This document shows, piece after piece, positions 1,966 to 48,918 of a stretch of 64,000 nucleotides of DNA (the first letter of the stretch is position 1; each line of letters starts with the position of its first letter). A model generated the notes under the pieces. It saw only the letters and a list, made by a program, of their open reading frames with translations. It searched no databases and was not told the origin of the DNA. The stretch is from Andalucia godoyi And28 (taxonomy: Eukaryota > Protista > Jakobida). The stretch is from NCBI GenBank assembly GCA_009859145.1, contig VRVR01000020.1, positions 211,710 to 275,709 of the forward strand. Direction: 5' to 3'. Position numbers and translations under genes: made by a program.

Positions 1966-2250
1966 TCACACCCTTCTTCGGCCCGTATCATCGTCTTCAA
2001 GAGGCAGATCGTACACCTCATGGAACTCCAAAAGAGCTTTCATCTGCGTGATCCCTTCATCAGCACGCGTCAAGCACCACGTCGCATATTCCACTGAGCC
2101 CTTCGACTTGTCTCCGAATTTCCGAAATGTATCGTACGCTTCTTTTTGGATGCGCTTGAAGTACTCGGGAGGAAGTTTCCTCGCCAACTGCAAGATCACT
2201 CGGTACTTTCCCAAAACCACCGAGCGTGGAATGACTGCGTGGTGGTTCAT
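1966..2250 (-). CDS. LYR-motif (Complex1_LYR-like) small protein (94 aa)
   Basis: VVLGKYRVILQLARKLP...Y...AYDTFRK follows the LYR pattern V+.LYR.+LR.AR.+P...F, with KYR in place of LYR. Confidence 0.6.
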   Translation of the reverse strand: MNHHAVIPRSVVLGKYRVILQLARKLPPEYFKRIQKEAYDTFRKFGDKSKGSVEYATWCLTRADEGITQMKALLEFHEVYDLPLEDDDTGRRRV

Positions 2251-2288
2251 CTTGTGTGAGAGAAAGAACGTCTGTGAGTAACTCAGCC

Positions 2289-2669
2289 TCAGCTGTTGTG
2301 AATTGAATCCGATACAGTAGATGGTGGAATCGATGGTCTGGACAGCGTGGAAGCCTGTGCAGACTGGGAAGCTTTGTCGTTCACCGACTGGGCAAGTTCC
2401 TTGTGTATGTGTTCCCGAGCAGCTCTTTTTGACTGTCGAATTCTCCTAAAAGCAGAGTTTGAGGGAATTTCAGAGGAAGAAGAAGAAGAAGAAACAGCAG
2501 CAGCTCCGTACGAATTCCTATTGCTTGCTGAAGATCCAGTTGCACCGCTGCTGCTTGATAAGGAACGCGGAAAGGCAGGCAGCGAGGCAGCGAGGACTTT
2601 TCTTCTTGCTCTTCGGTCCAGAATTCGATGAAGCTGTTTCGGATTCACCTTCACCGTAAATTCACTCAT
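2289..2669 (-). CDS. NF-YA (CBF-B/Hap2)-like small protein, subunit-interaction helix only (126 aa)
   Basis: VKVNPKQLHRILDRRARRKVL matches the NF-YA A1 helix YVNAKQYHRILKRR. The rest is Ser-rich with no clear YLHESRH...GGRF DNA-binding helix. Confidence 0.5.
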   Translation of the reverse strand: MSEFTVKVNPKQLHRILDRRARRKVLAASLPAFPRSLSSSSGATGSSASNRNSYGAAAVSSSSSSSEIPSNSAFRRIRQSKRAAREHIHKELAQSVNDKASQSAQASTLSRPSIPPSTVSDSIHNS

Positions 2670-3045
2670 ATACTACACTACTCGTGAAAAGTAGCACCCT
2701 TTTTCCTTTTTTCCCCTTTTCGTCCATAGTATTAATTATTTTGAAAACGTTCCGTCTTCCAAAAACCCAATCGGCTTGTCCACATTGTTTTCCCTTTTGC
2801 CAATTCATGAGTTCACGAGCCCCGACTCAACAGAAGCGGCTGTAGTTGTGGGCGTTTTTTTTTTTCGCGGATCTGTTTTTCTTTTCTTCGCATCCTTTGT
2901 TTAATTCGTGATGTTTTTTCTACGTTGTTGTTCTACGTGGATTTAGGTTTTTCTCCTCGCAATTTGGGATATTTTGAATCTGGCTCTACGGGGAGGGAAA
3001 AAAAGAAAGAAAAAGAAACAAGAATTGTAATTATACTGAAGAAGA

Positions 3046-6000
3046 ATGACGGGCGTGGTGGCGGTTGACTCTCCAGAGACATTGGAGCAAGTTTTGGGGA
3101 TGCTTTTGCAGCCTGATTCCAGGATTCTCGCTTCTGCAGAAGCATCTTTAGCTCCGTTTATGCGATCCAAACAGTGTGTTCCTGCATTTCTGCAGCAGAT
3201 GACGGATTCTCAAAATCCTGGAATTCGACAAATGGGGGCGGTACTCTTGCGCTCAAGAATCTCTCGGTTTTGGTCGAAGCTTTCAGTGGAAGATCGTAAC
3301 CAAACGAAGCAAGTTTTGCTGCATTTGCTTGTGCATGAGCCGCTGACTGTTGTTCGCTTATCCGTTGCAAACCTGATCGCGGATCTTGCAAAGTACACTG
3401 TCCCTGCCCATCAATGGCCGGAGTTGTTCCCATTTATGTTTCAGTGCTTTTCGAGCTCCGACTCGGTTCATCGCGACATTGCAATTCGTTTGTTTGAATT
3501 TATGTTGTCGACGATCGGCCCTTCGCTGAAAGGTTTTATGGGACCTATTATGCAGGTGCTGAGTTCTGCGTTGGCGGATGCTGAAGCGGCTGTCCGTGCT
3601 GCGGCAATACGATGCTTGAATGCATTACTGGATAACATTGAGGGCACCGAACATGTTGCTGCGCTAATTGCAATGATTCCCGTCATGCTGAATGCAATGG
3701 TCTACTGCGTGCAGACCCGCCAGAACGAGCCAATCTTTGAGGGACTCGACGTGATGATTCAAGTGACGAATACAAATCTAGATGACTTGGTCCCCTTTAT
3801 CCCGCAGTACGTGGAGTTTGTGATCTCCGTCGCGAGTGCGCAGCAAGTGGAAGTTTCCACGCGGGAGAAGGCTCTGGACTACATCGTCCTGTTGGCAAAC
3901 ATGAGACCAAAGTTGCTGTATCAAAAGTTCCAACTTCTGAACACGATTCTGGGCGGAATGTTCAGTGTAATGGCAGAAAAGATGGATTTGGATGTCACGG
4001 ACGAAAGTGAAGACGGCGCACAGAAATTGGGATCGAACTCTCTCAAGGAATTGAGTTTGCACATTCCATCCAAGCATTTGTGGCCTGTGGCTGAGGCAAT
4101 GTGCGGTCAGGGATTCCAATCTGCGGATGCAGGAAGTCGTCGTGCCGCCCTTGTCGCCATCGCGATTCTTAGCGAAACTTGCAATGATCAGGTTCGGGAC
4201 AATCTTGCCCAGCTTGTTCGAGGTGCTGTCCATTTGCTGGCAGGAGATCCCGATATTACAGTTCGAGACGCAGCGTGCTTCACCATTGCACAGTTTTCCG
4301 AACATCTGTATCCCGAGATTTTGGAGTTCCATGGTGACGTTATCCCTCCGCTTTTACGGCTGCTTTCGGCGCCGTCAACACACCCCATTGTTCAAGAATC
4401 CGTTTGTCTGGTGCTGGATTCCTACTGTGAGTACTTTGGAGAGCGGATCGACCCGTATCTCCGAGCGATGATGGAGACGTTCTCTTCTGTAATGCAGCAT
4501 GGGAAACTCATGGGCCAAGCTGCAGCGATCGGCGCGATTGCAGCCGTTGCTCTTGCAGCCCGCCATTTGTTTGTTCCGTACGCGCACAGCACGATGGACT
4601 TCCTCGAGCATCTCATGGGCATTCATGACCCTCTTCGGATTGTCCTGCGGGCTCGAGCAACGGAGGCATTAGGAAACATTGCAGTTGCAATCGGAAACGA
4701 GCATTTTGCCCCGAGGCTGGATAGAGTAATTCAACGAGCCGTGGAAGGCTTTTCCATCCAGAATCCGGAACTGAATGAGTATACGTACGGGCTGTTTTGC
4801 TCTCTCGCCGAAGTGATGCCGCTTGCTCTGGTTCCTCTTCTGCCAAAGATCGTCCCTCTTGCTTGTTCTTCTTGTTTTTCCGATGCAGGAATCTTAGCAA
4901 GCGAGGTCGAGAGAACGCAGTTGTTTGGAGCGCAACCAAGAGTTAACGTTGGGGATGGTGAAGTGGGCGAGGGCGAGGACGAGAACGATGAGGAGGACAT
5001 CGATTTTGGAGAAGAGGACGAAGAAAATGATATTCATTTGAAGATTCCATATTCGATTTTAGACGAAAAAGCCGCTGCAGTGGCTGTCTTGGCGAAGCTC
5101 GCCCGTTTCACGGGAACCGCATTTGCTCCATTTCTCCATGACGCGTCGGACGCCGTGTTGTCTCTCTCGAAGTTTCTTCACGAGCACGTTCGCATGAACA
5201 TCCCTGAGGCGATATTTGGGTTCGTGAAAGTGTTGAGTGAAAGCGGGCTCCCGGCAACGGACGAGACATCGCGCATTTTCGAAGTCTCCATGTCCACCAT
5301 GCTGCACTATCTTGAAGCTGACGAGTCTCGGACTGTGTGCTTGAAATCATGCGAGTATTTGCAGGAAATCGCAAAGGTCACCGGTCCTACTCCCTTGGGC
5401 CCGTTTCTCGAAGACTTTGTTTCGGCATGGCAGCTGTTGCTCCAGAAGAAAGCAGTCTGCCAAACTCTATGTTATGATGAAGCGGACGGGGATGACGACG
5501 ACGAAGACACGAATCGGAACCTCACGGATGCCGTTGGGGATTCCATTATTGCTTTTGCGCAGGTTTTTGGCGAATCCTTTAAGCCTGCTGTTGATGTTCT
5601 GGAACCATTCTTGATGAAGTACGCAGACAAGCGGCGATCCGAAGACGACCGCATTATGGCAACCGGCGTGCTTGCAGAGTGTGCGCGGTTCCTTGGAGCG
5701 CATTGTCCCCTTTATGCCGGAAAATGGTTCTCCCAAGCTTGGGCTTGGACAAATTCTGATTCCGTGTCAGTCCAGCGGAATGCGATTTTCATGCTTGGAG
5801 TCCTCGCCGTCAATGGAGGGCCATCCACTCAGGCGAAATTCTCGGAATTAATGCAGCTGTTCCTGTCGATTTCGAAGCTAGACGCACCTGCCGAGATCAA
5901 GGACAACGCAGCGGGTGCCATTGCCCGCATCGTTCAAAAATTTGGTTCTACCCTTCCTCTTGGACCGGTCGTGCAGTTGCTCGTTGATTTCTTGCCAATC

Positions 6001-6712: not shown

Positions 6713-6752
<40 letters not shown>
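6679..6752. repeat. GAGT/GT compound microsatellite
   Basis: Read directly. It produces the spurious MCVCVC leader of the 6717 ORF. Confidence 0.95.
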
Positions 6753-6755
<3 letters not shown>

Positions 6756-6893
6756 GGTTTTTGCGTTTGGATATCCAGCAACCAGGTCTTTCATTCACTA
6801 TATACACGTAAATATTTGGAATCCATCCTTCGTACAGGGGGGAGACTGAGAAATCGATTGGATTTCGAGGAGAGTTTCCGGAACCGAAGAGAA

Positions 6894-9800
6894 ATGAGCT
6901 GCGGCGACTTCTCTGTTCTGTCGCTTCTGCCTTTGCTGCTTCTGCTGGTCGTTCCGCTGTGTTCTGCATATAGATTTTGTATTGATTCGACGTTTCATCT
7001 TCAAAACTGCGATGGCTACTATCCTTCTGTACAGAGCATCGTCACTTCGGCCCATTTTGTAAATGGTTCCCAGATTGTAATGTTTGACGGTTCGTACGCC
7101 GGTCCTGGCTTCTGCAACATTACGTTTCCACTTGTGCATGATTTGACGATTCTGGGAAATACAGAAGTGAATTGCAATGAGGATTCTCCCGGATGGACAT
7201 TCACACCGGCTTCTTCAAGAATATACATATCTGGTGTGTCATTCGCTTGGTGCTACTCCACTCGAAACGGGGCCGCTCTGTCCTTAACCGGCGTTTCGAA
7301 CGTAACGATTACCGACGCATTTTTCGGTTTTAGCACCAGCCGCGTCCCTTTGAACTGCATTAACGACGAAGAATGCTATGATTTGAGCGATGTGGGCATT
7401 GGGGGTGCTCTGGCAATTACTGGCTCTGTGAATGTTTCGGTTCGCAGCTGCCAATTCCTTCTTAATTATGCAAGTTCCGATAATTTTTACGGCTATTCTG
7501 GGAACGGTGGCGGCATAGGAATCTCAAAGTCACAACATATACTTGTTAGCGACTGCACGTTCGTTGGGAACATGGCGGATAATTGGGCGGGAGGGGTCTC
7601 CATGGGCTTTTCCTTGGATGTCCGCATAGAGGGATGCCGATTTCTGAAGAATGTTGCAGGCTGGCAAGGCGGAGCTGTGGTTGCGTTTGGAGGGACGTCG
7701 TTCTCTATCACTGGCTCGGATTTTATTGAAAACTCTGTTGGACCGCAATCTGCAGTTGGCGAGGGAGGGGCCATTTTCTTGCGAGATCCGATGCCGTCGT
7801 CGATCGAGAAATGCACCTTCATTAATAATGTTGCACAAGCTGTCAGTGGTGCAATTTCATTTCGCCAGTCTTCGGGTCCAGATACGGAGACTGGTCTGTC
7901 TGTTACAGATTCAGTGTTTCATAATAACCAAGCGTCTGCATTTGGAGCGGCGTGTTCCCTGTTTGCCTCCTCCCAGTTCACGAGATGCTCGTTTACGAAC
8001 CATACTGTGGCAAACGTAGGTGGGTCATTGTACATTGCTGGATCATCCACGATTTTGATCAACTGCAATTTTAGTGGCAATTCTGCAACGCAGTATGGGG
8101 GATCCATCTCCGTGAACGGCTGGGCATCGAATCTATACATGTTTGGAACTGTTATCATTTCCAACAGCGTTTCTGGATCTTTTGGTGGTGGTTTGTATCT
8201 GGATACCGGGGCGTTTGTGTCGGCATCGTCTGGTTGCACCATCAACGTGTGGAACAATTCAGCTTTTGATTCTGGGGGCGGCGTGTTCGTCAACACGTAC
8301 GGGGGCCTTTCAGTTACAGGCACTATGTCATTCGTTGGAAACACCGCAGTCAACGAAGGTGGCGGCTTGTTTCTCGGAACGCAGGCGTCATTTGAAGTCT
8401 ATGGGACCACCATTTTTGACTCGAACTCTGCGCTCTCCGGTGGTGGCTTGCAGCACAATCAGGCGTATCTTCCAGCGTTGTCGGCGGGAACTGGAAATGG
8501 ACAAATGATTTTCACGAGAAATGTTGCAGGTTTTGGAGGTGCAATCTCGTTGAATCACCTTGGCGGCTTGACGATGTCAGGTGTCAGCAATATATCGCTG
8601 GTGGAAAATAACGCGCTGGGAATAGGCGGTGCAATGTTTCTCTTTTCCGACTTGTTCAATCTCACATCGATCATTCCGGAGAATCTCGCCGTTTTGATCG
8701 GGACCACCGAAGTCTTCGTTTCTGGTAACACGGCTCGACATACCGTCAACCAACTTCCCGCTGCGTTCGGCTCTGGCCCATTTCAGATTCTGCCTTGTTC
8801 GTCTGACGTCGTTGGGACCATTTTGGGACCGTTTAATCATGGGCGGCCTTCCACTTTTCAGGTTTGCGTTGCAGATGCTTTCGCAAAGGTTTTGGTATTC
8901 GCCCCCGAAGGTTCCATGCTGCTGCAAATTGAAGAAGGCGGATCATCGTTTCCAAGCCCAGTCGTCGCATCCTGCGTGAATGGCGTTTCTTATTTCTCCG
9001 GTGTGCAACTGTACTCCTCAAACTCTTCCTCGAATGACATCCTTGTGCGATTTACATACCAAATTCAGCAAGAGTCTGCATTGAATTTGGTGATCATGAT
9101 TCAGTCTGCAACGTTTCCCGTGCAGATTCTCCCGTGCCCGCCAGGATTCATGTCACAGAACGTATCTGGAATTGACGTGTGTTCTTCATGCCCACAGGGG
9201 ACCTATAACTTGCAGCCGTCCTCTCCGTCCTGTTTTTCTTGTCCCGATGCCAGTTTGGCTTCCTGCAGTCCATCGAAAATCCTCACGGAGTCGAATGTGT
9301 GGCTCCTTGAAGATGGCTCTGGCCCGGTGTCTTTGTACACCTGTCCCCTTGGCTACTGCAAAGATGATAATCAATGTTTTTCAAACAGAGATCCAAAAAG
9401 CCCCCTGTGTTCCTCGTGTCTGCCTGGATATTCGGAATGGAATCTCGAGTGCATCCGTTGCTCGGAAACCGGAAACGGAGTTATTATTTTCAGCGTTATT
9501 ATCGGTCTTTGGGCCTGTATTGCTATCTTCCATTTTGTCTGCCGTTCTGCGATTGGCATGACGTCTATTTTCTTTTACTATACTGTTACTTGTTCAATGG
9601 TGCTTCCGCCTCTTGGATCCTCAGATCTGCGAATTCAAAGCGTGTTCTCCTTGCAACCATTTTCATTTGGGCCTGACACGTGTCCCTTTAGTCGGGATGG
9701 CATTGGCTTGTACCTCACAAGATTGTTTTACCCTGCTGTGTTGTTTGGCCTTATTTTGATGACCGCATTCGTACACTTTTTGTCGTTTCGTCTTTTCAAA

Positions 9801-10628
9801 TCCATGGATTTCAACATGTGGCAGTACCTTCGCTCTGCATTTGTCCTTGCCCTTTCCGTCCAGCAATCTCTTTCAATCGTGATGTTTGATTTTCTGAATG
9901 TTGTGGACGTTGGAACCTGGAAGATCGTGTACGGGTTCCCATTCATCGATGCCTCCTCTCATCGATACACATCACTTGCTGCATTTACCATTTTTGTTCT
10001 GATCCTCGTTTCAGCGGGGATTCCTTTTGTGGTGTTGATTTTGTGCGCAATTCATAAGCGAAGGCCGTTTCTTAAGGGATCTGCGCTGTATGCGCTGTTT
10101 GAAGGTTTTCGTCCCGATCAGCCATTCGGTCCATTCTTCTTCATTATGCGACGCGTATCCGTCCCTGCTTTGAACTTCTTCATGACCATTCGTTACAGAT
10201 ACCATTCGTCGTCTCGTGTCGCTGCTATCATGTTTCTGAATGTATGTTTCCTCTTCTCGCACGAAAGACTGACTCCGTACGCCAGCGAATTTCTAAACGT
10301 CGTCGATGCAGGTTCATTGTTGGGGGTCTGCTTTGTGTGCATGTCGGTATTGTTTTACGAGGATTCCGGTTCGGTTTACTTGACTGCGGCGGTGTTTTGG
10401 TCAATTTTTGCAATTTTTGCAATACTGCTGTTTATGTCTTTTGTGTGGAAATCAGCTACCGTTGCGAGGCGGTTTCGGTTCTTCCAGCGTGTATTTCAAA
10501 AACCGCCTACCAATCTGAATGTTCCTGCAGAGATGACCAGGATCAATCACGGTCCTGACTCATTTCTAGATCCGTTGTTGTCCAAGACTGGGGTATCCTC
10601 ATCTTCTTCGACGTCGTCCCTATTGTAG
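6894..10628 (+). CDS. Pmp/polymorphic-repeat beta-helix surface protein with Cys-rich stalk and multi-pass TM C-terminus (1244 aa)
   Basis: Signal peptide MSCGDFSVLSLLPLLLLLVVPLCSA from ATG 6894. About 15 GG[A/G][I/L/V]/FxxN repeats. CPPGF...CSSCPQGTY...CPLGYC...C.SC.PGYS Cys-rich region, followed by several hydrophobic helices. Confidence 0.8.
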   Translation: MSCGDFSVLSLLPLLLLLVVPLCSAYRFCIDSTFHLQNCDGYYPSVQSIVTSAHFVNGSQIVMFDGSYAGPGFCNITFPLVHDLTILGNTEVNCNEDSPGWTFTPASSRIYISGVSFAWCYSTRNGAALSLTGVSNVTITDAFFGFSTSRVPLNCINDEECYDLSDVGIGGALAITGSVNVSVRSCQFLLNYASSDNFYGYSGNGGGIGISKSQHILVSDCTFVGNMADNWAGGVSMGFSLDVRIEGCRFLKNVAGWQGGAVVAFGGTSFSITGSDFIENSVGPQSAVGEGGAIFLRDPMPSSIEKCTFINNVAQAVSGAISFRQSSGPDTETGLSVTDSVFHNNQASAFGAACSLFASSQFTRCSFTNHTVANVGGSLYIAGSSTILINCNFSGNSATQYGGSISVNGWASNLYMFGTVIISNSVSGSFGGGLYLDTGAFVSASSGCTINVWNNSAFDSGGGVFVNTYGGLSVTGTMSFVGNTAVNEGGGLFLGTQASFEVYGTTIFDSNSALSGGGLQHNQAYLPALSAGTGNGQMIFTRNVAGFGGAISLNHLGGLTMSGVSNISLVENNALGIGGAMFLFSDLFNLTSIIPENLAVLIGTTEVFVSGNTARHTVNQLPAAFGSGPFQILPCSSDVVGTILGPFNHGRPSTFQVCVADAFAKVLVFAPEGSMLLQIEEGGSSFPSPVVASCVNGVSYFSGVQLYSSNSSSNDILVRFTYQIQQESALNLVIMIQSATFPVQILPCPPGFMSQNVSGIDVCSSCPQGTYNLQPSSPSCFSCPDASLASCSPSKILTESNVWLLEDGSGPVSLYTCPLGYCKDDNQCFSNRDPKSPLCSSCLPGYSEWNLECIRCSETGNGVIIFSVIIGLWACIAIFHFVCRSAIGMTSIFFYYTVTCSMVLPPLGSSDLRIQSVFSLQPFSFGPDTCPFSRDGIGLYLTRLFYPAVLFGLILMTAFVHFLSFRLFKSMDFNMWQYLRSAFVLALSVQQSLSIVMFDFLNVVDVGTWKIVYGFPFIDASSHRYTSLAAFTIFVLILVSAGIPFVVLILCAIHKRRPFLKGSALYALFEGFRPDQPFGPFFFIMRRVSVPALNFFMTIRYRYHSSSRVAAIMFLNVCFLFSHERLTPYASEFLNVVDAGSLLGVCFVCMSVLFYEDSGSVYLTAAVFWSIFAIFAILLFMSFVWKSATVARRFRFFQRVFQKPPTNLNVPAEMTRINHGPDSFLDPLLSKTGVSSSSSTSSLL

Positions 10629-10993: not shown

Positions 10994-13200
10994 ATGCACT
11001 CTTCTTGGATTAAAGCGAACGTGGACAGAGTCCAGTCGGCTACCGGTTTGTGCCTGGACGAAACGAGTTGCTTCGTGAATCAACAGCCCGTCGTTCAGAT
11101 TCTGTCGCGAACCTCCACCGGAGCATCCCAGTTCCGATCGCTGTATGCATTTTATTATATATACATATTTCATTTTTTTCCTCTTCCTCCTCCTCCTCCT
11201 TCTTCTTCTTCTGCTGCTGCTGCCTTTTCTGCCTTTTCTGCCTTCGACCCGCTCTGTTGTTGCGACCTGCGATGTGCAATAATCGTCATGCAACTCATAT
11301 GCTTCCTTTCTGCTTCAGGTGTGTGATTTCAGACGGTCAAATGACATGGCCGCACGCATTTTTCATCGGAAATGAGAACCAAACCATCCATGAATCGGAT
11401 TGCCCTTGTACGGTGAAGCTTCAGAAGTTCAGAATCATGATGAACAAATCGTATGTGTGCTGTCGTCCTTCAAAATTGAAGCAAGTATTAATTTACAGTC
11501 TCTGACTGACACCCCAACACCAATGCAGAAACGTCAGCGCGTGGATTATTGTACTATCTTGGAGGTTGATGTTCCCCAGCACATCCAAGCAATGGCCAGA
11601 TCGAAAGACCCCGTTCTCCCCTTCCGCATTTGAAGAGGATATCTTTCAAACGCAACCACCCGACGCACCAAAGAAACCACGCAGTGCTACGAGGGCTCTG
11701 GAACTGAGCACACCTCACGTGACCCCGTCGAAGCAGCCGGTGATGCAATACCGTGCAGTGTCGAATGCAAAGACCGGTGTCGTTCTTGAGGAATCATTCT
11801 ACCGCTCGGCAACTCCCCAAAATGCTCGGAATTTTCAGCTCAGTACTTCCGAATTGTTTCCACTGAAAGCACTGACAGTCTTGACTCAACGATTCTCGAT
11901 CAAGGCTCGAATCATCAAAAAACTGCCGCTGCGAGAGTACACGAACGCCAAAGGACCAGGAAAACTGCAGTCTGTGATTCTCATGGATGCCGAGAACTCA
12001 CAAATGCGCGCAACCTACTTTAACGCAGAGGTTGATCTGTTCGATGCTCTCTTGACGGAGGGCGCGGTTGTTACGATCGAGAACGGACGGGTGAAGACGG
12101 CAGATCCAAAGTATCAGCAACCAGGGTTACTGGACCAAGAGCTGACGCTCGGTAGAGACACCACAATTACAGTCATTCCAGATGACAGCACCATCGCATT
12201 CTCAGCCGTCCGATACGTCGCGATAGAGAACCTGAGCAAAGTGATGGACTCGAATCCAAAAAGCAAGCCGGTAGTTTCAGTCATCGGGGTCGTTATTGCA
12301 ACAACCGCTGCAGAGTCCGTGACAAGGAAGGACGGCTCGAAGGTGCTCAAGTACATATTCGAAATTGCGGATGAGTCGAAATGCTCTGTGCAAGCAACCG
12401 TCTGGAAAGATGAAACCGAGGAGCTGCTGTGGGTCCCTGTTGGATCCGTGCTGTCGCTTACCTCCGTTGTCGTCTCGCGATGGGATACCGTATCCCTGGC
12501 AACATCAAAACAGTCTGACATCAGAGTTAACCCACAAGGTGCAGATGCAGAAAGCCTCCTGATCTGGTACAGATCATCCTTGCAGACGCACGACATCCGA
12601 GAAATGATTTGCCGAATGACCAAAAAAGCTGCACCAACAGCCCTGCAATTGGGCCCTTACGAAACGCTGTTCGAAGCAACAAACGACGTCGCAGAAGCTG
12701 CACACCATTCGCCAGCAGAAGTCATGTTCACGCTCGACGCCATTGTATTCGTGATGCCAGATGGCGCACACCCAGTGGCCTACGAGGCCTGCGGATCCGA
12801 AAAATGCGGGAAGAAAATCGAGCGGAAAGAAGGAGGTCTTGTATTCTGCGGGAAATGCGGCAAGCAGCCAGATTCGATAGTTTACCGATTCCTCACATCC
12901 ATTATTCTACGCGACATGTCAACAGAGAAACGAGTTTCTGTTTTGGGAGGCGTAGGGAAATGTCTGTTCGGCGACATGGAGGCAAACGAAGTGGAAGCCA
13001 TGCGCCAACAGGATCTGGCGCAGTTCAGGCATGTCTGCATGGAGACAACAGGCCGCAGATTCCGCATGAAGTTGAAAGCAGAAAGACTTGTGGTGAACGG
13101 CGAGACGACATGCCGGATGACCGTTGTGGCGATACAGGACGTTGGATGGAAGCAGCGGTCTGACGAGATTTTGCCGAAACTCAAGGCAGAGTCTCTGTAG
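10994..13200 (+). CDS. RPA1: Replication protein A 70-kDa subunit, 3 exons (650 aa)
   Basis: Exons 10994-11142, 11319-11450, 11529-13200, with GTATGC/GTATGT..CAG introns; splicing keeps the frame. It restores the N-terminal OB fold (PVVQIL...FRSLCVISDG). Also DBD-A (IKARIIKK...N.KG.GKL) and the DBD-C zinc ribbon (C..EKC.KK...C.KC). Confidence 0.88.
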
Positions 13201-15801
13201 ACAAATTCTCTCTGGACATCTGATCCAACGAAGGCTCGCCAACAACCGGTGGGCTTTCTCCAATCATTTTGTTCGCAACTGCACTTGCGCCTGCAACTTC
13301 GCTCAACCCAGACTTCACGTTCGAGTCCGCTGTCTGCTCTTCCAACACTTCTACTCCGTTTGCCTGCTTGTCCAATTTCTTTCGTTCCCAGGGCTTCAAT
13401 AAAGGTTTCTTATTCGGCAAAGATGCCTTTGCGCCCGCTTTCGGCTTATCGTCAATCTGCCGAATTCCAGGAGGCTGATGACCTTGCTGTACCATGGACA
13501 GGACACTTATGAACTGCTCAGAGTAATTACCCTGCTGGAGAGGAGCGGCAGGCTGCACGCCGATGTCGATGCCCTGCGGCACCGATGGTGCATCTGCCAC
13601 GACGCCTGCACTCGAGGGATCCTCCGATTCCGAAACCCCGTTCTCTGCAGCGCGATCCTCCGTCACAAGCGAGTCAATCTCACGCATGAACGCATCCTCA
13701 TCGTCTATGACCTCCACATACTTTTTGTAGTATTTGACTTTGAGCTTCGTAAGCCAAGATGTCGCAGAGGCGGACACAGTGGTATAGTTCGGAGACGCCT
13801 TGAATTTCTCCACCCCATTGTTGAAACGAACATCGCTGCCAAAGTCATATGATAAAAAGCGATCTCTGAGTGAATCACCAACGATCACCCTGCGGCTCGC
13901 CTCTGTCGGCTGAGGAGCGAGTGGGGCAACCGCCTCAGTCACGATTTCGATTGAGGGCGCAGAAGACTGCGGGGCTTGACCGCCTTTCTGCACGACCTGA
14001 TTTCCCTGAAATGAAATCTCTCCCCTTGAAATTTGGCCAAAGAAATTCATTAGCTGCGAATTTTTCCACTTTGGATCGCTGCTGGACGATATTGTTTGTT
14101 GAAGCGCAGTAGTGAAGTCTCGTGCAGCAGCGACGTCCTCCGATGTCTTTGGGACGCTGTCCGAGGCCAAATCACCTTGCTTTTCTTCAGCTTCCGACAT
14201 TAAACGCTCGAACTCCCCTTGAGGGGTTGAAGCATCCTTGTCATCCGGCTTGGCATCCATGAACTGTTTTTCCCGCTCGACTTGGCGCTCCAGCCAGGTC
14301 TTCTCACCAAACGGCTCCACCGACATTCCCATAAACTGCTCCAGTGTCGGAAGGCTGTCAGGATCGAGGGACAAATCAAGAGAGTCAGACATAGAGTCGG
14401 CTCGGTTGCTCGGCGATCCAACCGACAACACGTCGTCCGTTGATGGACTCTTGAACTCGGCGGGTTCTGCGGAAGGTGCGCTCGTCGATGTCGGTGTCGG
14501 TATCTGGCCACTGGGTCTGACTCTTCCCTTCAGCACATCATCAATCGAAGAAGCGGGAACAGATGGAATCGCCGGAGAGGGATCCTCATCGAACTTTTTC
14601 AGTTTCTTCTTCTTTTCAGCACCAATGCCAAGCGGTGCTTTCTCGCCGGGTGTGAAAGCAGACTCTGTCTTGTGGATTCCGTCACGCACGGCGGGATTCG
14701 GGGAGACAAACTCCGTTGCATAGGGTTCCGATCGAACCGCCGCTGGATTCTCGGAGTGCACGCTCGCATGATGGGGAGCAAGATTATAGTAGGCATTCTG
14801 TGCGGACGGAGCTCCTCTGTATGCGTACATCCAACTCTTCATTGCGTCCAGTTCCGAGCGCACGGATTGCAAAGCAGTCTCGTTATCCCTAAGCGTATTT
14901 TCCTCCGCCATGCCCGCATGATTAGAATATATTTTTTTCTTCATAATTCTTATTCGACCGGCAGCAGCCTGCGATCCAAATCGAGAATAACAGACAAAAA
15001 TTGAAACAATGTAGAAAGTCATACCTTCTCTGAACTGTGTCACGAAGACTTGAAATCTGTGAGCGACACTCTGTAATTTCAGACCGCAGAGAATGCAAAT
15101 CTTGTCGCATCCGCAACATTTCATCCCGTACAAATTGTCTATGTGCAGAGCACGGTGCAAAACACGTTAATGAAATTTGCTTGAACTCAGCACAATAATC
15201 AAGGAAAAGCGTGGACATACTCGGAAGCAGACGAGGAACTTGATGACTGCCGATGCAAATCGAACTGTCTATCCCTCATTGACTGCGAGATGGTCTTGAG
15301 ATCATCTAGCTGTCTCTTCAGAAACTCCACTTCGTATTTCATAGCATTGTTGGACTGCTCAATCGCGTCCTTCACACCGGACTTCAGCATCGCCAGGTCT
15401 TCTTGCATTTCAACTCTTACTCTCTCTCGATCTTCTCGAACAATTCGCTCCACTGACTTTGACACGCGATCTGGAGCACCCTCACCTCCACCTGGACCTA
15501 GTTCATCTTCATTGCGTTCACCTTCCGTATGCAGTCCAGTGTTCAGATAACTCGCAACAACATCGACTAATCGTGTCTTTTTGATTCCTTGTCCAGCGGC
15601 ATAGAAAAGAGATCCGCCCAGCAAGAACGACAGCCAATTAAACCCCGATGAGGGCACGGAAGACGAAGACGACGGTGACCTGGTGCTCGACCTTACATCC
15701 GGCACATGCGAGAGCCATTGGTCATGGTCTCTCCTTTGCAAGTGTGCCTTTACGCGATTCAGCTCTGGAAATCCGGGAGGCAGCCCTTCCCGAAAGTCCA
15801 T
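13181..15801 (-). CDS. Chimeric peroxin-like protein: PEX14-like TM/coiled coil + PEX5L/Pex20-type PEX7-binding motif + PEX39-like domain with KPWE, 3 exons (800 aa)
   Basis: Exons 15801-15221, 15138-15025, 14888-13181. Introns of 82 and 136 bp with GTATGT/GTATGA donors, TTAAC/CTAAT branch points and TAG acceptors; total 2403 nt, in frame. Motifs: GFNWLSFLLGGSLFYAAG; coiled coil ending SELDAMKSWM; DPKWKNSQLMNFFGQISRGEISF; FLSYDFGSDVRFNNG..KVKYYKKY; FISVLSMVQQGHQPPGIRQIDD..KPWE. Confidence 0.72.
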
Positions 15802-15928
15802 TCTCGCCTTCACTCTAACCGGTGATCGTGCGCTTCTCAACACCAAACCCGTGAAACGCTCTCCTTTCGTGTCCTCTCTTTTAAGTGCTCTCTCCGTGCA
15901 TTGCGCATCGTGTTGAGGTTCTCCTTAG

Positions 15929-16454
15929 GGCACACCCATTTAAATGAACGCAAGGGGTTCCAGGAGCGAGAGGCGTGAAATGTCCGGCAGAACCAGACAT
16001 TTTCAATCGTTCATGAGTGCCTCACGCGAGGACTCCAGCTCGCTTGCACTGGGAATACCGCGTGGATTCCGGCACACACGTGATGAACGACAAATCGTTC
16101 ACCCAACTCAGGAGGGCAATCGTGCAGATCGGGATGGCGCAGCCGCTGTCGGAGCGCAACTTTCATCACCTGCACCATCGGGTTCTGAAAATGTGCAAGT
16201 ATGAAACCGACGGAGCAGACAAACCCGACAACGTGTGGCGAAGTGTGAGGAGGATGTGGTGCCAAATAAAAACGGTGAAATATCAAAATACGAACGCAGC
16301 AGTGTTTTATTCAATATTTTATTTGACACAACGAAGTCCAAGGTGAAACGAGAGAAACGGAAAGGGGGAAAAGAGAGAAGCGGAAAGGGGGGGGGAAAGA
16401 AGAAAGGCTTGAAGAAATGCTGGGCTTTCCGAATTGAATTTTTATGGAAGCGCC
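15929..16454 (+). mobile_element. MITE-like non-autonomous element, copy 2 (526 bp)
   Basis: Inverted copy of 266-783 with the same GG...CC ends and TA one base outside (15926-27, 16456-57). Carries a private 27-bp purine-rich insertion near 16370-16395. Confidence 0.65.
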
Positions 16455-16725
16455 GTAACTGTGTGCAACGAGGACTGATGCTTGGAGCTTGATGCTACAG
16501 GAATCCATTATTTATGTATTTTTTCGCTCAATTTTTTTTTAAATAGACTTTTCAGTCTTTAGGCTTTTGGTGTTGCGTTTCTTTAATCAGCCATTTTTGT
16601 ATTTGTGATTTTTCTTCTTTTGTTCGTTTTGTTTTGTTTTTGTTTTCCTTCTTGGACATATTACGTCACTACACGCACACAGAGTTACAAGTTGCAAGTC
16701 GCAGGAAAGTGAAAATCGAATCGTC

Positions 16726-18463
16726 ATGGTGAAGCCGAAGCGCCAGTCGAAGCGGGTGAGTTTGAAACAAAAGTACAAGATGGAGCGTAAAGTGAAGGAG
16801 CATCACAGAAAGCTCCGGAAGGAAGCCAAGAAGGCTGGGGCGAAGAAGAGTATGTTGCGTGTGGATGATTATATTTCTGTTGCGTGGCTTTAATTTTTGA
16901 GTTGGTCTTGTGTTCTTGTTGTGCTGACATGTTTATTCGGTTTTCCTCCTCTCTTTCTTATTATTCTTTTCGTTTTCATTTTTTATAGAGTGGACCAAGG
17001 ATCCTGGTATTCCGAACTTGTTCCCGTTCAAGGAACAGCTCCTGCAACAGATTTCGGAAGAAAAGCGGTCGATTTTGGAGAGGAAACAACAGGAAAAGGA
17101 AGCTCGGAAGCGCGAAAGAAACTCGTCGATGACGCAGCTGCAGCAAATGCAGTTTGATGCGCAGAAGCGATCGAATGAGTATGATACTGCGAACAAGATG
17201 CTTGGAATCACGGAAGAGGGGTCGGGGCATATGACGATGCGCGCAGATGCAATGTCGCATGCTCAGCGTCGCGCTTATTTCCGTGAGTTCAACAAGGTGA
17301 TGGAGGAGTCTGATGTCATTATCGAGGTGCTGGATGCGCGTGATCCGCTTGGATGCAGAGCCCCGGACGTGGAAAGGATGATTCTTACCAAGGATCCGAA
17401 CAAGAGAATCATATTGCTATTGAACAAGATCGATCTGGTTCCTCGTGAAATCGTTGAGAGATGGCTATCTGTGTTACGGAAGGAATTACCGGCCATTGCG
17501 TTCAAAGCATCGACTCAAAAGCAGGGACATATCAGCCATGCGTCCGCTGCGACGGGCTCGAGACATGTGGGCACATCGGAATGCCTGGGAGCAGACACGC
17601 TAATGCAGCTCTTGAAGAACTACTCGCGGTCGCAGCAAGTCAAAAAATCGATCACCGTCGGAATCATTGGCTTCCCGAATGTCGGAAAATCGTCGGTGAT
17701 CAATTCTCTGAAGCGCGCCCGTGTGGCTGCTGTTGGAAACACCCCTGGTCTGACGAAGACCTCGCAGAACGTCAAGCTTGACAGCAACATCAATCTGATT
17801 GACTCGCCAGGTATCATCTTTTCTTCTGCGTCGCTGGATGCGGATGTTATTTTGAGAAACGCAGTCAAAGTTGAGCAGATTGAAGACCCTACTCCGGCCA
17901 TTGATGCAGTGTTGAACCGCTGCCGACGAGAGAAACTTATGGAACTCTACTCCATTCCGATGTTTGTCAACACGAATGAATTTCTTGCGCTCATCGCGAG
18001 GAAGAGAGGATATCTTAGAAAAGCTGGAGTTCCCGACTATGTCCGAGCCGGTCGCACCATTCTTGACGACTGGAACTCTGGAAAGATTCCGTTCTTCACC
18101 ATTCCTCCTGACAACGCTGGTCTTGGTCTTGGTGGTGTTTCCACGTCGCTTTCTGCCACTGAAGATTCTCAGATTGTTGCGCAGTATGCGAAAGAGTTCG
18201 ACATCGGCGCCCTGTTGGGTACGTTGGACGCCGCGGTTCACACCCTAAAGTCTGTATCGGATGTTGGTGCGCAGTACGTTGCCATGCAGCCTGGTAAGGC
18301 TGGCGATGCAGTGTTGTCGGAAGAGCAATTAGAAGAAGAGTCTGGTTCTGATGATGACGACTCTGATGATGATGACGACGACTCTGATGACGATGTCGAA
18401 ATGGAGGATGATGACGATGACGATGACGATGACATGGATGATGACGAGGAGGACGATCTGTAA
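16726..18463 (+). CDS. GNL3: Nucleolar circularly permuted GTPase GNL3/Nug1, 2 exons (532 aa)
   Basis: Exons 16726-16849 and 16989-18463. GN3L_Grn1 N-terminus (KYKMERKVKEHHRKLRKEAKK..KDPGIPNLFPFKE), G4 NKID, G1 GFPNVGKSS, G3 DSPG, acidic tail. Confidence 0.92.
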
Positions 18464-33565: not shown

Positions 33566-35132
33566 TTACAAATTGCTCGCTCGAGGCAACTGCGGGGTCT
33601 TGTAGTCCTTCGGAAACAGTCTGGAATAACTTTCTCGTGATTTCTTGATGTACCGCTCAGCGACCTCACAGGTATCCTTAATGGCAAAGTAGCAAACCAC
33701 AATTCTATAGAAATTCGAGATGCGATGGAGTCTTTCCATAGTACCATGCGAAAACTTTGACTGCTCTGCCTTGGCAATCCATCCGTCAATAAAATCCGAT
33801 CGTTCGAGCAGCTTGGTCAACCACAGTGTGTAAGGAACATTGTCCGCACTTTGTTTCTTTGAATTCGTAAACTTGGAGATGGCATGCCCCACTTTCCAGA
33901 GCTTCTCTGAGAATTTAGATTCCTTCTTCTGCGACGGCCCCGAAGACTCCTCCCAGTGATTGATATGTGGAATGACCTTTGACAACTGCTGCGCAGCCAG
34001 AATCTCAGCGGACCGGACGAAATCATCAGCCGCACGAGCCCAACTTGACGTGTCTCCAAAATCGACAGCTGAAAACTTGACCAACAACGTACAGAGACCA
34101 TCACAGAACTGGTTCTTGTTCGTCGACATGTGAAACTTCAGGTGCGGTTGGTCCCATGCTTCCGGCGGCACGAAAAAGTTCGGTGACAGATACGCACCGG
34201 TGGTCAATGTCTGCCGAATCTTTCGAAGCAAGAAAAACGGATGGCGGATCGACGTGATGGGAACATTAAACTCCTCGGCATTGCACTGCACCGTGACATC
34301 CGTTCGTCGACAAACAAAACAAAATAAAAATAAAAATAAAAAATAACTCAAAAATAAATGAATACATAAATGAATGCATTCTGAATCGCAATCAAGGGAG
34401 AGAGGGGAAACACCAAAATAATAATAAACATACGTGCGGCATTGCAATCTCTTTGAAATTAACTGGAAATGCAGGGTCTGTGTACGATACTGCGCCGCGA
34501 TACGCCTCAGGAGCACTGAACGCCGAGGCAGAGGATGTAGGTCCCACGGCTTGGTAATCCGACTCTCTTTTTCAAGAATGAACGAAAAAACATGTATGCA
34601 AACACGTATATGCATGAGAAATGAAGTCAAGAAAACATCGGAAGATAAAATCGAAAAACAGAAAAGTGTACATACAGTGAGGAATCCAAAGCAGAATTGC
34701 TCGATGAGGGAGAGGCCCGAAGCTGTGTTACGCGGTCTCGATACATGGTTTCCTGATAAACACACATCATCAAACCACCAAACCACCAAACCGACAAGCA
34801 AGACAAAACACACATAACATAATTAGCATTCTGCATCAATCGATTCTAACGCTCGGCCAATAAACGAAGATGCGTGGCAAAAAGCGGAATAGGTACCCAC
34901 TACCCATTCGTCACGAAGTACATACATAATCCTGGATGGTCGCAAGCTGCTCTGCATATCCTTCAAACTTTGGGCGCATTGCTGCAAGGCCGGAAACAGC
35001 TTGTTCGTATAAATCAGCCGCTTTGAGATACTCGCCTTGCCCTTCTGCGGTAATCGCGTCCTGTGCGACCTTTCCAATTTTCATCAGTTCACGGCGAAGT
35101 AGCTCGTCCGCTGCATTCTCTTCGGTGCTCAT
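33566..35132 (-). CDS. MIT-domain protein with conserved-looking C-terminal domain, 4 exons (378 aa)
   Basis: Exons 35132-34926, 34752-34676, 34566-34434, 34285-33566; all donors GTATGT; total 1137 nt, in frame. MIT helices: AQDAITAEGQGEYLKAADLYEQAV...YRDRVTQLR. The AAG acceptor at 34567 is the least certain. Confidence 0.65.
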
Positions 35133-35469: not shown

Positions 35470-37857
35470 TCAGACTTTATCGTAGGACTGGGCACGCTTG
35501 CTACGGATGCGAAGGAACACAATTGCGCCAATTAACGCGATCGCACCAATAACTCCGCAAGCGACGGCAATGGACACCACGATGTCTCCGCTGGAATACG
35601 ACGATTTGGGAGCCGCGACTTCGGGGATTGCACGAGCTTGAAGACTGAATTCCGAAGGTGTCCAGTACTGGCCAAGTGGTTCGACACCAGTTTTCCAAGC
35701 CGGATCCTCAAAAAACAGCACTGCTTTCGAGTATACCGGGACCATGGTCTGCGCAGATTGTTCATATGCAAAATTCCAATCCAGAATCCGGAAGTCTCCT
35801 GGAACTCGAGAAAACTCGCGGGGCAAGTCTTCGTTGCCAGCGTGCATTGCGTTGAAGTTGAATCGGGCGCGCGCCAGAGTCGGAAGAGTGTCAAGTCCGC
35901 TGTACCCTGCCGTCTGGGCATCGCTCACAAAATCCGGCCACTCAACGACGTTGCCGCCCGTGAAACTCGAGGACTCCATCACGTCGTCGAGAAGTCCGCC
36001 CCAGGTGACAATAAACGCCTTGCCGTGGAATCGGAGCTTGGTGTTGAACAAAGAGCACGCAGAACCACACAATCCATCGGACAGAACCAGCATCTTCTTG
36101 AACGAGTACCGGATGGGATTCGGAACAAAGGTAGAGAAGTTTAACGATGAAACACACTCTGCTGGAAACTGCGACAACGGCGAGTGGCGCGACCACAAGC
36201 CTGCGCGCTCGGTCCAAACATCATAGGAGTACCATGAGGTGTTCTGTACTGGAAGTCCCGTGAACGGATCAAACCGACTCTGAGGATCAAAGTCTGAGTC
36301 GCCAGGAAGAACAGACAGATCATCAGAAATAGAGCTCTTTCGGATCTCGTATGGCTCATACAACCAGCGGAACGAATCGGCGGGCAAAGACCACTCTTCT
36401 GGGAACAAACTCTGCAATGCGTTGTACGACAAGCAGATGATTCCGCCTCCATTCGACACCACATCGAGCAATAGATTCTCGACGCTGCTTGTCTGCGAGA
36501 ATTGAATGCATTGCTGCATGGTCTGCAAGAACGACGCATACCAAGCTCCAAAGACATACTCCTCGGAACCAGCCATGTAGAACGTAGCCAGCTTCATGAC
36601 CATAACCGATTGATCTGCGAAATACGTGCACACCACGGAATTGTTCAATGATGATGCAACAATCGTCGCTGCCCCGATTGCAAGAGGCTCCATGGAGGCG
36701 GCGGCGTTGGATGATGACGGCTGACCAACCAACTTGCGGATCTGTTCATAGTGCTTGTACACGTCTCCCAGTGATGACTTTGGGGCTGTAAATCCTGCAT
36801 TCGGGTTCTCTGGAGTCGCAACATTCTGGGGTTTAATAGGATGGATCACCGACGACGGAAGAACCGTGGGATCGGTCAAGCGCTTCAATTCCTCATAGTG
36901 TGCATACGGATCTTCCGGAGCTTTCAATTTGTCCTTGGTGTGCACGTCATGACCCGAAGCCTTGTGAATTCTCCGGAACTTTGAGTTCTTCGATTTGAAC
37001 GTAATCTGCTCATAGTCCACAGTCGCAGGGCCCGAGATAGCAGGCAGCGTACGTGCATACAAATCAGCGGCATTGGCAAACGCCGCCTGCGAAACAATCA
37101 AGCGAGGAATCGCAACGAAATCAGTCGTTGCTCCTCCGAATGCAAACGTGATGCTATCGGTATTCGGAAGAGAGATGGACCGTCCAATCGCGAGCGCCGG
37201 AATAAGATTCTTCACTGCGTTGTTGAAGCGAACACCATGGTCTCGAGACACTCCAGCTCGATCACCAAGTCCCTGGATGTAGTCCTTGATCGGAAGCCCG
37301 TCCACAGAAAGAATGGGCCGTCCTATGTATTTCTGCAAGTCGATTTGACCGCCCACCCACGCAGAGTACCGAGACCCAGCAATTACCGTTTCACCCGCTG
37401 CAACCACCAAAAACTGATTATTATCAGCAACTGAAGCAGTGACCTGGAAAGGCAAAACATACAAAAACGTATAGTACGCCGCAGGGGGAAAATACAATGT
37501 ATGTGCATCTCCCAGTCTGGCAAACACCTCGGAAAGATCTTGGTGGAAAGCATAGTCTGAGGCATAGGCAGTCGCAGCAATTCTGTCCAACTCTGCATTC
37601 AGATCCACCTTGATGTAAAATGGAGCGCCAGAATCCGTTGAAATGTCCGCAAACGCATACAGCTTCACAAGATTCCGCAGCTGTGCAACAGTCTGCGACT
37701 GAACCGTTGAGGACAGCGGGATCAAGTCCACACATGCTTGAAGTTGAGAAGGCCTCAAACCCTGCAAAACCGCTACCGTGCAAGCATCGTTGTCCGCACG
37801 CGACACCGAAAGCAGCGCCAACCCGATCACAACCGTCGCAAAGAAGACAGCACGCAT
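35470..37857 (-). CDS. Type I membrane-anchored S41-family peptidase (795 aa)
   Basis: Signal peptide; DAHT; LLLDVVSNGGG and SDGLCGSACSLF S41 motifs; C-terminal TM helix; short tail ending YDKV. Confidence 0.8.
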   Translation of the reverse strand: MRAVFFATVVIGLALLSVSRADNDACTVAVLQGLRPSQLQACVDLIPLSSTVQSQTVAQLRNLVKLYAFADISTDSGAPFYIKVDLNAELDRIAATAYASDYAFHQDLSEVFARLGDAHTLYFPPAAYYTFLYVLPFQVTASVADNNQFLVVAAGETVIAGSRYSAWVGGQIDLQKYIGRPILSVDGLPIKDYIQGLGDRAGVSRDHGVRFNNAVKNLIPALAIGRSISLPNTDSITFAFGGATTDFVAIPRLIVSQAAFANAADLYARTLPAISGPATVDYEQITFKSKNSKFRRIHKASGHDVHTKDKLKAPEDPYAHYEELKRLTDPTVLPSSVIHPIKPQNVATPENPNAGFTAPKSSLGDVYKHYEQIRKLVGQPSSSNAAASMEPLAIGAATIVASSLNNSVVCTYFADQSVMVMKLATFYMAGSEEYVFGAWYASFLQTMQQCIQFSQTSSVENLLLDVVSNGGGIICLSYNALQSLFPEEWSLPADSFRWLYEPYEIRKSSISDDLSVLPGDSDFDPQSRFDPFTGLPVQNTSWYSYDVWTERAGLWSRHSPLSQFPAECVSSLNFSTFVPNPIRYSFKKMLVLSDGLCGSACSLFNTKLRFHGKAFIVTWGGLLDDVMESSSFTGGNVVEWPDFVSDAQTAGYSGLDTLPTLARARFNFNAMHAGNEDLPREFSRVPGDFRILDWNFAYEQSAQTMVPVYSKAVLFFEDPAWKTGVEPLGQYWTPSEFSLQARAIPEVAAPKSSYSSGDIVVSIAVACGVIGAIALIGAIVFLRIRSKRAQSYDKV

Positions 37858-40993: not shown

Positions 40994-41488
40994 TTCCTTG
41001 ATCAATGACCCTTTATGGCTTCTTCTCAAATTAATAGCAATTGTTGTTACCTTTTTCTGTCTTTTCTTCTTCTTCTTCTTCTTCTTCTGTTGGCACTGTT
41101 CAAAGAGGCGCTCAGCGTTAAATGTACATGAATTCGGGTTATACGCCAAAAATAAATCTCAAAATACACACTAGCAAGTTGCACAGCACGAAAGAATCCT
41201 TGTCATTGTCACTTTGCCTTCTATTATTATTATTTTTATTTTATTATTTTTTTTGGACTCTCACTTTTTGGTGGGAAAGCCTTGTTTAACGACACTGTTA
41301 CAGCAGCTGCAGATTTGCAGACTTGCAGACCCGCATGTGCTGCTGGCTGTAGTCCAGATGCATTTGGCAAATCTGTGGGAAAGGAAAGAAAATGCAATTA
41401 ACGTTGCTTTGGCGTACCATGCGCGATGGCATTCGTGGGTGTGTGTGATATGCATGGGGGTGTGTGGCTGGGAGCGTGAAAGTGTAAA

Positions 41489-45375: not shown

Positions 45376-45898
45376 CTTGGAGTCGAATCCACAGTGCGTT
45401 TTGGACGTGTACAGTATTAAATCCGAAAAAACGAAAACAATCGTCTTTCATTTCATTTCATTTAATTAAAAAAAAAAGCCAAAATAGACATTCTTAATTA
45501 ACTTTGCTCGTGTGTGCTGGTGTGTGTGTTTTGTAGCTGGAGCAAAGGAAGTCCGAAAGCACTTGCTGCTCGATACGTAGTGATTGCTGTTGTTGGATGA
45601 TGGCCCATCAACGTAAGCTTGCTCATACGTACTCGTAACGTCAGCAAAAAAATTTGCACAAATCATTGAATCGCTTAGCAACGCCCGTTCTTCACACAGT
45701 TGTTAATGTTATTCCTAATGATGCTTACGGACGCGGATCGAAGTGACCAGTAGTTTTTGTATAGAAGATTGTTCGTTCAAAAAAGAAGTAGGATTGCTGA
45801 TCATTGAGGAACATTAGAGCGTTGCGGAGGCTGGTGTGTGGTTTAATTGACTGATACGTTTGTGCGTTTTGTGCGTTTTGTGTGGTCTGTTTCCAAAG

Positions 45899-48875: not shown

Positions 48876-48918
<43 letters not shown>

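Follow-up and report, generated by a model that had tools for sequence, protein, structure and literature searches.

A 64,000-nucleotide (nt) stretch of the Andalucia godoyi And28 genome (contig VRVR01000020.1, positions 211,710 to 275,709), henceforth referred to as the window, contains on its minus strand (15801-13181) a gene, ANDGO_08593, in whose predicted protein two different PEX7-binding modules, carried by separate proteins in yeast and humans, sit in tandem on one chain, as judged by sequence comparison. One is a box of the type found in co-receptors for peroxisomal targeting signal 2 (PTS2) and the other is a PEX39 unit. From the N- to the C-terminus, the protein is composed of a 52-residue N-terminus, a hydrophobic segment, a rod of ~145 residues, a disordered linker of ~230 residues, the box and the PEX39 part. 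ANDGO_08593 is a real and unusual version of a kind of fusion that was already familiar in plants, and its new elements appear to be the added co-receptor box and the missing Pex14_N domain.

The original prediction for this locus had joined three open reading frame (ORF) fragments into one protein of 800 amino acids (aa). The splice was confirmed: exons 15801-15221, 15138-15025 and 14888-13181 yield an uninterrupted 800-aa ORF, and all sequence strings quoted in that prediction were found in place. The same gene is present in the public protein set (eukprot ANDGO_08593, 753 aa), where the junctions of introns 1 and 2 are identical. Intron 1 (15139..15220, 82 nt, GTATGT..ATAG) and intron 2 (14889..15024, 136 nt, GTATGA..TTAG), on the minus strand like all further features of this gene, both carry a consensus GTATG donor and TAG acceptor, and their guanine-plus-cytosine (GC) contents are 41% and 38%, respectively, versus 52% in the exons. 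The sole difference between the two models is an additional 58-nt third intron in the public annotation (13291..13348, GTGTTG..GCAG) after residue 745. This intron is doubtful and may be a mis-prediction or an alternative form. Its GTGTTG donor and its exon-like GC content of 55% are atypical, and a weak C-terminal motif common to the orthologues is present only in the unspliced reading; for these reasons the last 55 residues are uncertain. The third intron lies 3' of every module and alters the C-terminal tail only.

The box occupies aa 483-532 (13988..14137), with a 24-aa core motif, PKWKNSQLMNFFGQISRGEISFQG, at 14003-14074. A segment beginning DPK, DPKWKNSQLMNFFGQISRGEISF (aa 503-525), had been put forward as a homologue of the PEX7-binding region of PEX5 and its relatives, and the evidence bears this out. 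The PEX7-binding motif is described as 24 residues with conserved Lys2, Ser6, Phe11 and Gly18 (Mix et al. 2018, PMC6203080). All four signature residues are present with the correct spacing in the Andalucia sequence PKWKNSQLMNFFGQISRG (K505, S509, F514 and G521, with L511 at position 8), as they are in every box-bearing sequence retrieved; by chance, the four-residue signature appeared in 1.1% of shuffles of the Andalucia protein. The human box, used as a query, gave an ungapped score of 58 against the Andalucia protein, compared with a mean of 16, a standard deviation of 4.7 and a maximum of 44 over 20,000 shuffles.

Database searches pointed to the same family. When exon 3 was compared by phmmer with 1.84 billion representative proteins, several matches covered only aa 472-550 (E=6e-5 to 7e-4), and those long enough to judge are PEX5 proteins recovered solely through the box. 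In Cymbomonas tetramitiformis, for example, the match at residues 281-339 lies in a protein named “Peroxisomal membrane signal receptor PTS1” that contains a full tetratricopeptide repeat (TPR) domain; two further box-only matches are fragments with many WxxxF motifs. When eleven boxes were combined in a profile and compared with all PDB sequences, yeast Pex21 was the top match (3W15_B, E=0.0016), in an alignment that covers its region of contact with Pex7 and the PTS2 helix. Neither the tail nor the box, used as a single-sequence PDB query, returned anything relevant, and Pex21 emerged only with the box profile. In the AlphaFold2 (AF2) model of the tail, aa 484-532 form a helix, a second helix and a beta hairpin, with a block-mean pLDDT (predicted local distance difference test) of 66-77. 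By its signature residues and its matches to PEX5 and Pex21, the region aa 483-532 is homologous to the PEX7-binding box of these proteins.

The second module, aa 575-740, is by its profile matches a complete long-form PEX39, containing a helical N-terminal domain, an amphipathic helix and the KPWE motif. Two blocks had originally been ascribed to PEX39, FLSYDF..KVKYYKKY (aa 576-622) and FISVLSMVQQG..KPWE (aa 691-733), and both assignments held. KPWE_dom (PF17733, former DUF5572) was detected by Pfam at aa 687-734 (13382..13525) with 42 bits against a cutoff of 27 (E=1e-10), and the KPWE motif itself corresponds to aa 730-733 (13385-13396). The amphipathic helix, EQFISVLSMVQQG (aa 689-701, 13481-13519), is predicted to be helical by AF2. 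Its spacing from KPWE, ~35-40 residues, is comparable to Leu21-Lys59 in human PEX39 (PMC12339391).

In the exon 3 phmmer search, aa 570-740 were also matched by free-standing proteins (164-211 aa) of chytrids, of a glomeromycete and of one fish, and the match from this fish, Chanos chanos (E=2.4e-4 library-wide), is named “C6orf226 homolog”, C6orf226 being human PEX39 (PMC12339391). A hidden Markov model (HMM) of seven free-standing PEX39-like proteins, one of which was the Chanos chanos protein, aligned with aa 575-740 as one domain at 93 bits (HMM positions 17-176/178). The same HMM gave only 36-49 bits on canonical PEX14s, via their KPWE_dom part.

The N-terminal helical domain of long-form PEX39, henceforth referred to as the mid domain, spans aa 572-648 (13640..13870) and reads F.YDF..D..F ... 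KLKVKYYKKYV. AF2 predicted four helices in this region; their block-mean pLDDT varied between runs and reached 88-90 at most. No Pfam family was found for the mid domain in scans from four organisms, and no PDB fold match was found with Foldseek. A precomputed “HTH_76” label on one orthologue (P0008) was not reproduced in a Pfam scan at E up to 1. A four-helix domain of this kind (F.YDF..D..F ... KAKWFYYSKF) precedes KPWE_dom in the long-form PEX39 of a fish, chytrids, a glomeromycete, Andalucia and Gefionella (P0003, P0007, P0010, P0011, P0013 and P0019). Human PEX39, with 101 aa, is too short to contain it, as judged from literature lengths alone. A PEX39 of 339 aa from the chytrid Chytridium lagenaria (P0014, KAI8836354.1) displays strongly hydrophobic N-terminal segments (Kyte-Doolittle 2.2 and 1.8) before its mid domain and KPWE_dom; it lacks the PEX7-binding box and seems to represent a different route to membrane tethering of PEX39.

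The N-terminal part of the Andalucia protein begins with a region (aa 1-52, 15646..15801) that lacks Pex14_N and whose start, MDFREGLPPGFPELNR, resembles the MDIPELHRG of an orthologue on metagenome contig L001. It is followed by the Gly/Ala-rich segment GFNWLSFLLGGSLFYAAG (aa 53-70, 15592..15645), which is the most hydrophobic stretch of the protein and a putative membrane anchor. The hydrophobic segment and the long coiled coil of the original prediction were both recovered, the latter as a single AF2 helix at aa 112-257 (14834..15459, pLDDT ~86-93) that spans both introns and is unbroken across both exon junctions. In the rod region, Pfam returned nothing but sub-threshold families of the coiled-coil type.

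The whole architecture was also found in single chains from other sources. In Trinity transcripts of the malawimonad Gefionella okellyi (849 and 887 aa), a single ORF comprises the anchor, the coiled coil, the box, the mid domain and KPWE_dom. Contig L001 encodes the same modules as a single intron-free ORF of 704 aa (1985-4099), for which the gene call was too short, the true start lying 354 nt upstream of the called start. On a second metagenomic contig (L002, GC 36%), two adjacent same-frame ORFs parted by a 48-nt GTACGT..CAG intron (4663-4710) join into an 803-aa protein with the same module order. The four full-length proteins align, and their invariant residues are concentrated in the box, the mid domain and KPWE_dom. 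Because the malawimonad transcript and the two metagenomic contigs share it, the architecture is not an artefact of the Andalucia gene model, and the claim of a single polypeptide stands.

On these eukaryotic metagenome contigs, prokaryote-style gene calling split (L002) or shortened (L001) the orthologues. A class of soluble box-plus-PEX39 proteins (P0005 and P0008) was considered and rejected: P0005, the fifth sequence, is interrupted by the end of its contig, and P0008 continues upstream over the 48-nt intron into an anchor and coiled coil. In AT-rich orthologues (L002, L003 and P0015), a short FDEIYN motif lies after the box and before the mid domain, and the box is followed by a lysine run instead of the NQVV strand of the beta hairpin. 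Word-index homologue searches with the full protein, the tail and a profile of five sequences yielded nothing beyond the protein itself or known members. By tblastx, this gene is the only content shared by L001 and the window, so synteny is uninformative on the taxonomy of L001.

Several features expected of PEX14 or of PTS1 and PTS2 receptors were looked for, and the original statement that no TPR domain or canonical Pex14_N is visible proved correct in Pfam scans of the protein, its orthologues and the upstream DNA. Pex14_N (PF04695) was absent from the Andalucia protein at E up to 10, from three orthologues, and from 930 nt of upstream sequence in three minus-strand frames; an identical scan detected Pex14_N in Ancoracysta PEX14 (E=1e-12). 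TPR domains were likewise absent in Pfam at E up to 10, with many found in the Cymbomonas PEX5 control. A single WMYAY at aa 251-255 is the one WxxxF/Y match, a number compatible with chance, and it was rejected as a PEX14-binding motif as it is not conserved in the orthologues. The sole cysteine is C218, and no conserved N-terminal cysteine is present; no cysteine is conserved among the orthologues.

Fusion of PEX39 to PEX14 has been described as the usual form outside opisthokonts (Chen et al. 2025). Skowyra and Rapoport 2025 (PMC12173945) draw on the plant PEX14 fusion to argue that PEX39 works close to the membrane, and according to a 2026 review (PMC13591263) Arabidopsis PEX14 carries an amphipathic helix and a KPWD motif in its cytosolic tail. 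The novelty of the Andalucia architecture is therefore smaller than originally claimed. An anchor fused to KPWE is already published and is an ordinary form, but none of the canonical PEX14s or free PEX39s sampled has the co-receptor box. No PEX5-type box in a membrane-tethered PEX39 protein was described in the papers mentioning PEX39 that were searched, and none of the papers searched mentions both Andalucia and PEX14.

The canonical forms retrieved for comparison were two plant-type PEX14s, identified by sequence only, and the PEX14 of Ancoracysta twista (P0021). All contain KPWE_dom and lack the box and the mid domain; Pex14_N was found by Pfam in the Ancoracysta protein and by eye only in the two plant-type proteins. 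Canonical PEX14, including that of Arabidopsis, shares with the Andalucia protein a membrane segment (putative in Andalucia), a coiled coil and a disordered tail with KPWE_dom (helix plus KPW[ED]), so that the PEX39 function is tethered to the membrane in canonical PEX14 and is predicted to be so in the Andalucia protein. In contrast, canonical PEX14 has Pex14_N and lacks both the box and the PEX39 N-terminal helical domain, a pattern that is reversed in the Andalucia type, and the anchors and rods of the two types have no detectable sequence similarity.

Other known peroxins resemble the Andalucia protein in part. The long-form PEX39 of fish, chytrids and Glomeromycota aligns end to end with aa 575-740, and PEX39 has the same amphipathic helix ~35-40 residues upstream of KPWE and basic residues after it. 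PEX39 (human C6orf226, yeast Yjr012c) is, however, a small soluble protein of ~100-210 aa, whereas in Andalucia it forms the C-terminal quarter of an 800-aa protein with a predicted anchor and is preceded by the co-receptor box. The box itself is like those of PEX5L, Pex18, Pex20 and Pex21 in its ~45-residue length, its helix-helix-beta hairpin order, its K2/S6/F11/G18 signature and its hydrophobic position 8. PTS2 co-receptors differ from the Andalucia protein in being soluble, in their multiple WxxxF/Y motifs and in an N-terminal cysteine that serves ubiquitin-dependent recycling, the motifs and the cysteine being not present or not conserved in Andalucia, and PEX5 differs in its TPR domain. 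Fungal Pex17 is alike by architecture only: it has no Pex14_N, and its N-terminal membrane helix precedes a coiled coil. It is a partner of Pex14 and has been connected with PTS2 import and with how efficiently PEX5 and PEX7 binding proceeds (PMC8172628). Unlike the Andalucia protein, Pex17 is regarded as specific to fungi, and neither a PEX7-binding box nor a KPWE domain is known in it.

By analogy with these proteins, ANDGO_08593 would fairly probably encode a membrane-bound PEX39 with an extra co-receptor-like clamp, carried on a Pex17-like anchor without Pex14_N and serving as a tethered station that handles PEX7. The earlier suggestion of a “tethered PTS2 receiving platform” is a reasonable inference. 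In the current model, KPWE docks at the bottom of PEX7's propeller, while the top face is bound by the PEX39 helix, which stabilises the PTS2 helix and is later displaced by the co-receptor box; the KPWE motifs of PEX13 and PEX39 compete for PEX7 at conduit entry and exit, and the C-terminal tail of PEX14, with its PEX39-like region, is cytosolic (PMC12173945, PMC12339391, PMC13591263). The Andalucia protein would, as PEX14 and Pex17 suggest, reside in the peroxisomal membrane and expose its tail to the cytosol; there, in competition with the PEX13 KPWE motif, it would extract returning PEX7 from the import conduit. Either the PEX39 amphipathic helix or the co-receptor-type box would cap PEX7 on its top face, the site of the PTS2 helix, and PEX7 could be held on both faces at the cytosolic mouth of the translocon, with or without cargo. 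PEX7 and its PTS2 cargo may thus be held and loaded beside the translocon before PEX7 is handed to PEX5. Since it lacks WxxxF/Y motifs and a recycling cysteine, the protein is probably not itself a shuttling co-receptor; for the same reasons, and because it is probably anchored, it should not enter the matrix itself.

A number of observations weigh against this assignment. The hydrophobic segment is weak: its 19-residue Kyte-Doolittle mean is 0.92, whereas the corresponding segments of three orthologues have 1.62-1.66 and canonical PEX14 has 1.9-2.0, and AF2 placed a helix there (aa 57-68) only with low confidence. The anchor and rod displayed no profile similarity to canonical PEX14 (hhalign of four orthologues versus three PEX14s, probability 2.8%). 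Of the “PEX14-like anchor” originally proposed, only the order of segments stood; with Pex14_N missing, no profile match and weak hydrophobicity, the label is unproven. For the box, an HMM of six PEX5 boxes gave 70.5 bits for exon 3, with the runner-up among 1,276 window fragments at 4.2 bits, and no match in the canonical PEX14s or free PEX39s sampled, a test that is partly circular because its PEX5s were found via the Andalucia protein; the published signature (PMC6203080) and the Pex21 profile match provide support independent of it. A Foldseek search of 350,542 chains with the AF2 tail model also placed 3W15_B at the top, with an E of ~1 that is non-significant alone, and the AF2 alignments were shallow (5 sequences). 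Finally, the architecture is known from only four or five sequences.

The main rival to a Pex17-like station, and one that we consider unlikely, is that the protein is simply the organism's own PEX14, an ordinary non-opisthokont PEX14-PEX39 fusion whose N-terminal PEX5-binding domain has been lost or has diverged beyond recognition. The order of anchor, coiled coil, disordered tail and KPWE_dom is indeed that of plant and Ancoracysta PEX14, PF17733 is titled “PEX14-like KPWE domain” in Pfam, and the F-N-W at the start of the hydrophobic segment resembles the F-H-W of plant PEX14. Such a PEX14 would nevertheless have to lack Pex14_N in four of four orthologues at E up to 1 or more, although the domain is easily found in the Ancoracysta protein, and to have an anchor and rod without profile similarity to PEX14, as well as a box and a mid domain that the canonical PEX14s do not have. 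Docking of PEX5 is thought to need Pex14_N, and a second, canonical PEX14 is therefore more likely, as with yeast Pex14 plus Pex17 (PMC8172628).

Alternatively, the soluble co-receptor may have been replaced altogether, with a PEX5 that lacks the box and with PEX7 and its cargo docking directly on this membrane protein for import. This appears highly doubtful. The box is of the full co-receptor type and aligns with Pex21 over the segment contacting Pex7 and PTS2, and A. godoyi PEX5 was not among the box matches of the library-wide search, which is weak negative evidence. Passage through the PEX13 conduit and receptor recycling are, however, driven by WxxxF/Y motifs and the N-terminal cysteine in the current model (PMC12173945), neither of which is conserved here, and a tethered box cannot accompany cargo into the matrix. 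It is scarcely credible that the gene model is an artefact that joins a membrane coiled-coil protein (exons 1-2) to a separate soluble box-plus-PEX39 protein (exon 3), as an in-frame ATG within intron 2 (MKKKIYSNHAGMAEENTLR..) would permit, given that the public annotation has the same junctions, all the modules are encoded in a single frame both in the Gefionella mRNA and in the intron-free ORF of L001, GC falls to 38-41% in introns with consensus GTATG..TAG ends, and the predicted helix is continuous over both junctions.

The genes neighbouring ANDGO_08593 are ordinary housekeeping genes, and none is a peroxin. A convergent RPA1-like ORF on the plus strand (11566-13200; Pfam Rep_fac-A_C and REPA_OB_2) contains the ANDGO_08593 TGA stop (13183-13181, minus) within its last codons, giving a 3' overlap of ~20 nt (13181-13200). 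On the other side, a divergent gene for a GNL3/nucleostemin-like GTPase (first exon ~16726-16893, main ORF 17018-18463) is separated from ANDGO_08593 by a 925-nt interval (15802-16726), which has a pyrimidine-rich stretch near 16350-16400 and probably serves both genes as a promoter region. A search for a Pex14_N exon in this interval found no family match in three frames of the ANDGO_08593 strand. The remaining neighbours include a class I/II aminotransferase-family enzyme (probably KBL), a DEAD-box helicase, a major facilitator superfamily (MFS) transporter, HIR1, a kinesin, E2F and two adjacent plus-strand ORFs of 1070 and 876 aa (45860-51733), each with an adenylate/guanylate cyclase catalytic domain, which could belong to a single gene or form a tandem pair. 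No Pfam family at E up to 1e-5 was matched by five other long ORFs (415-1303 aa; 6717-10628, 33566-34813, 35470-37857, 38915-41149 and 42481-44337).

Jakobids and malawimonads are often placed near the eukaryote root, and PEX39 was recognised only in 2024-2025. The proposed handover, in which PEX39 takes PEX7 out of the PEX13 conduit and aids its rebinding of PTS2 cargo, after which the top face passes to the co-receptor box, rests on work in yeast, frog and human. With both competing top-face ligands and the bottom-face KPWE hook on one predicted tethered chain, the Andalucia protein is a natural test case for that model, and the architecture occurs in at least two deep-branching lineages. 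Long-form PEX39, with a helical N-domain that is confidently predicted and unannotated, is widespread (fish, chytrids, Glomeromycota, a jakobid and a malawimonad), and a PEX7-binding box can occur outside the PEX5/Pex20 family. A further, decidedly unlikely scenario is that in jakobids and malawimonads PTS2-loaded PEX7 docks directly on a membrane-tethered box-PEX39 hybrid on a Pex17-like rod, which would take over part or all of the PEX7-binding role of PEX5L or Pex18/20/21; such a hybrid might represent an early state of PTS2 import, from which a soluble box and a free PEX39 separated later. If the PEX5 of A. godoyi lacks the box, the view of the origin of the PTS2 pathway would change.

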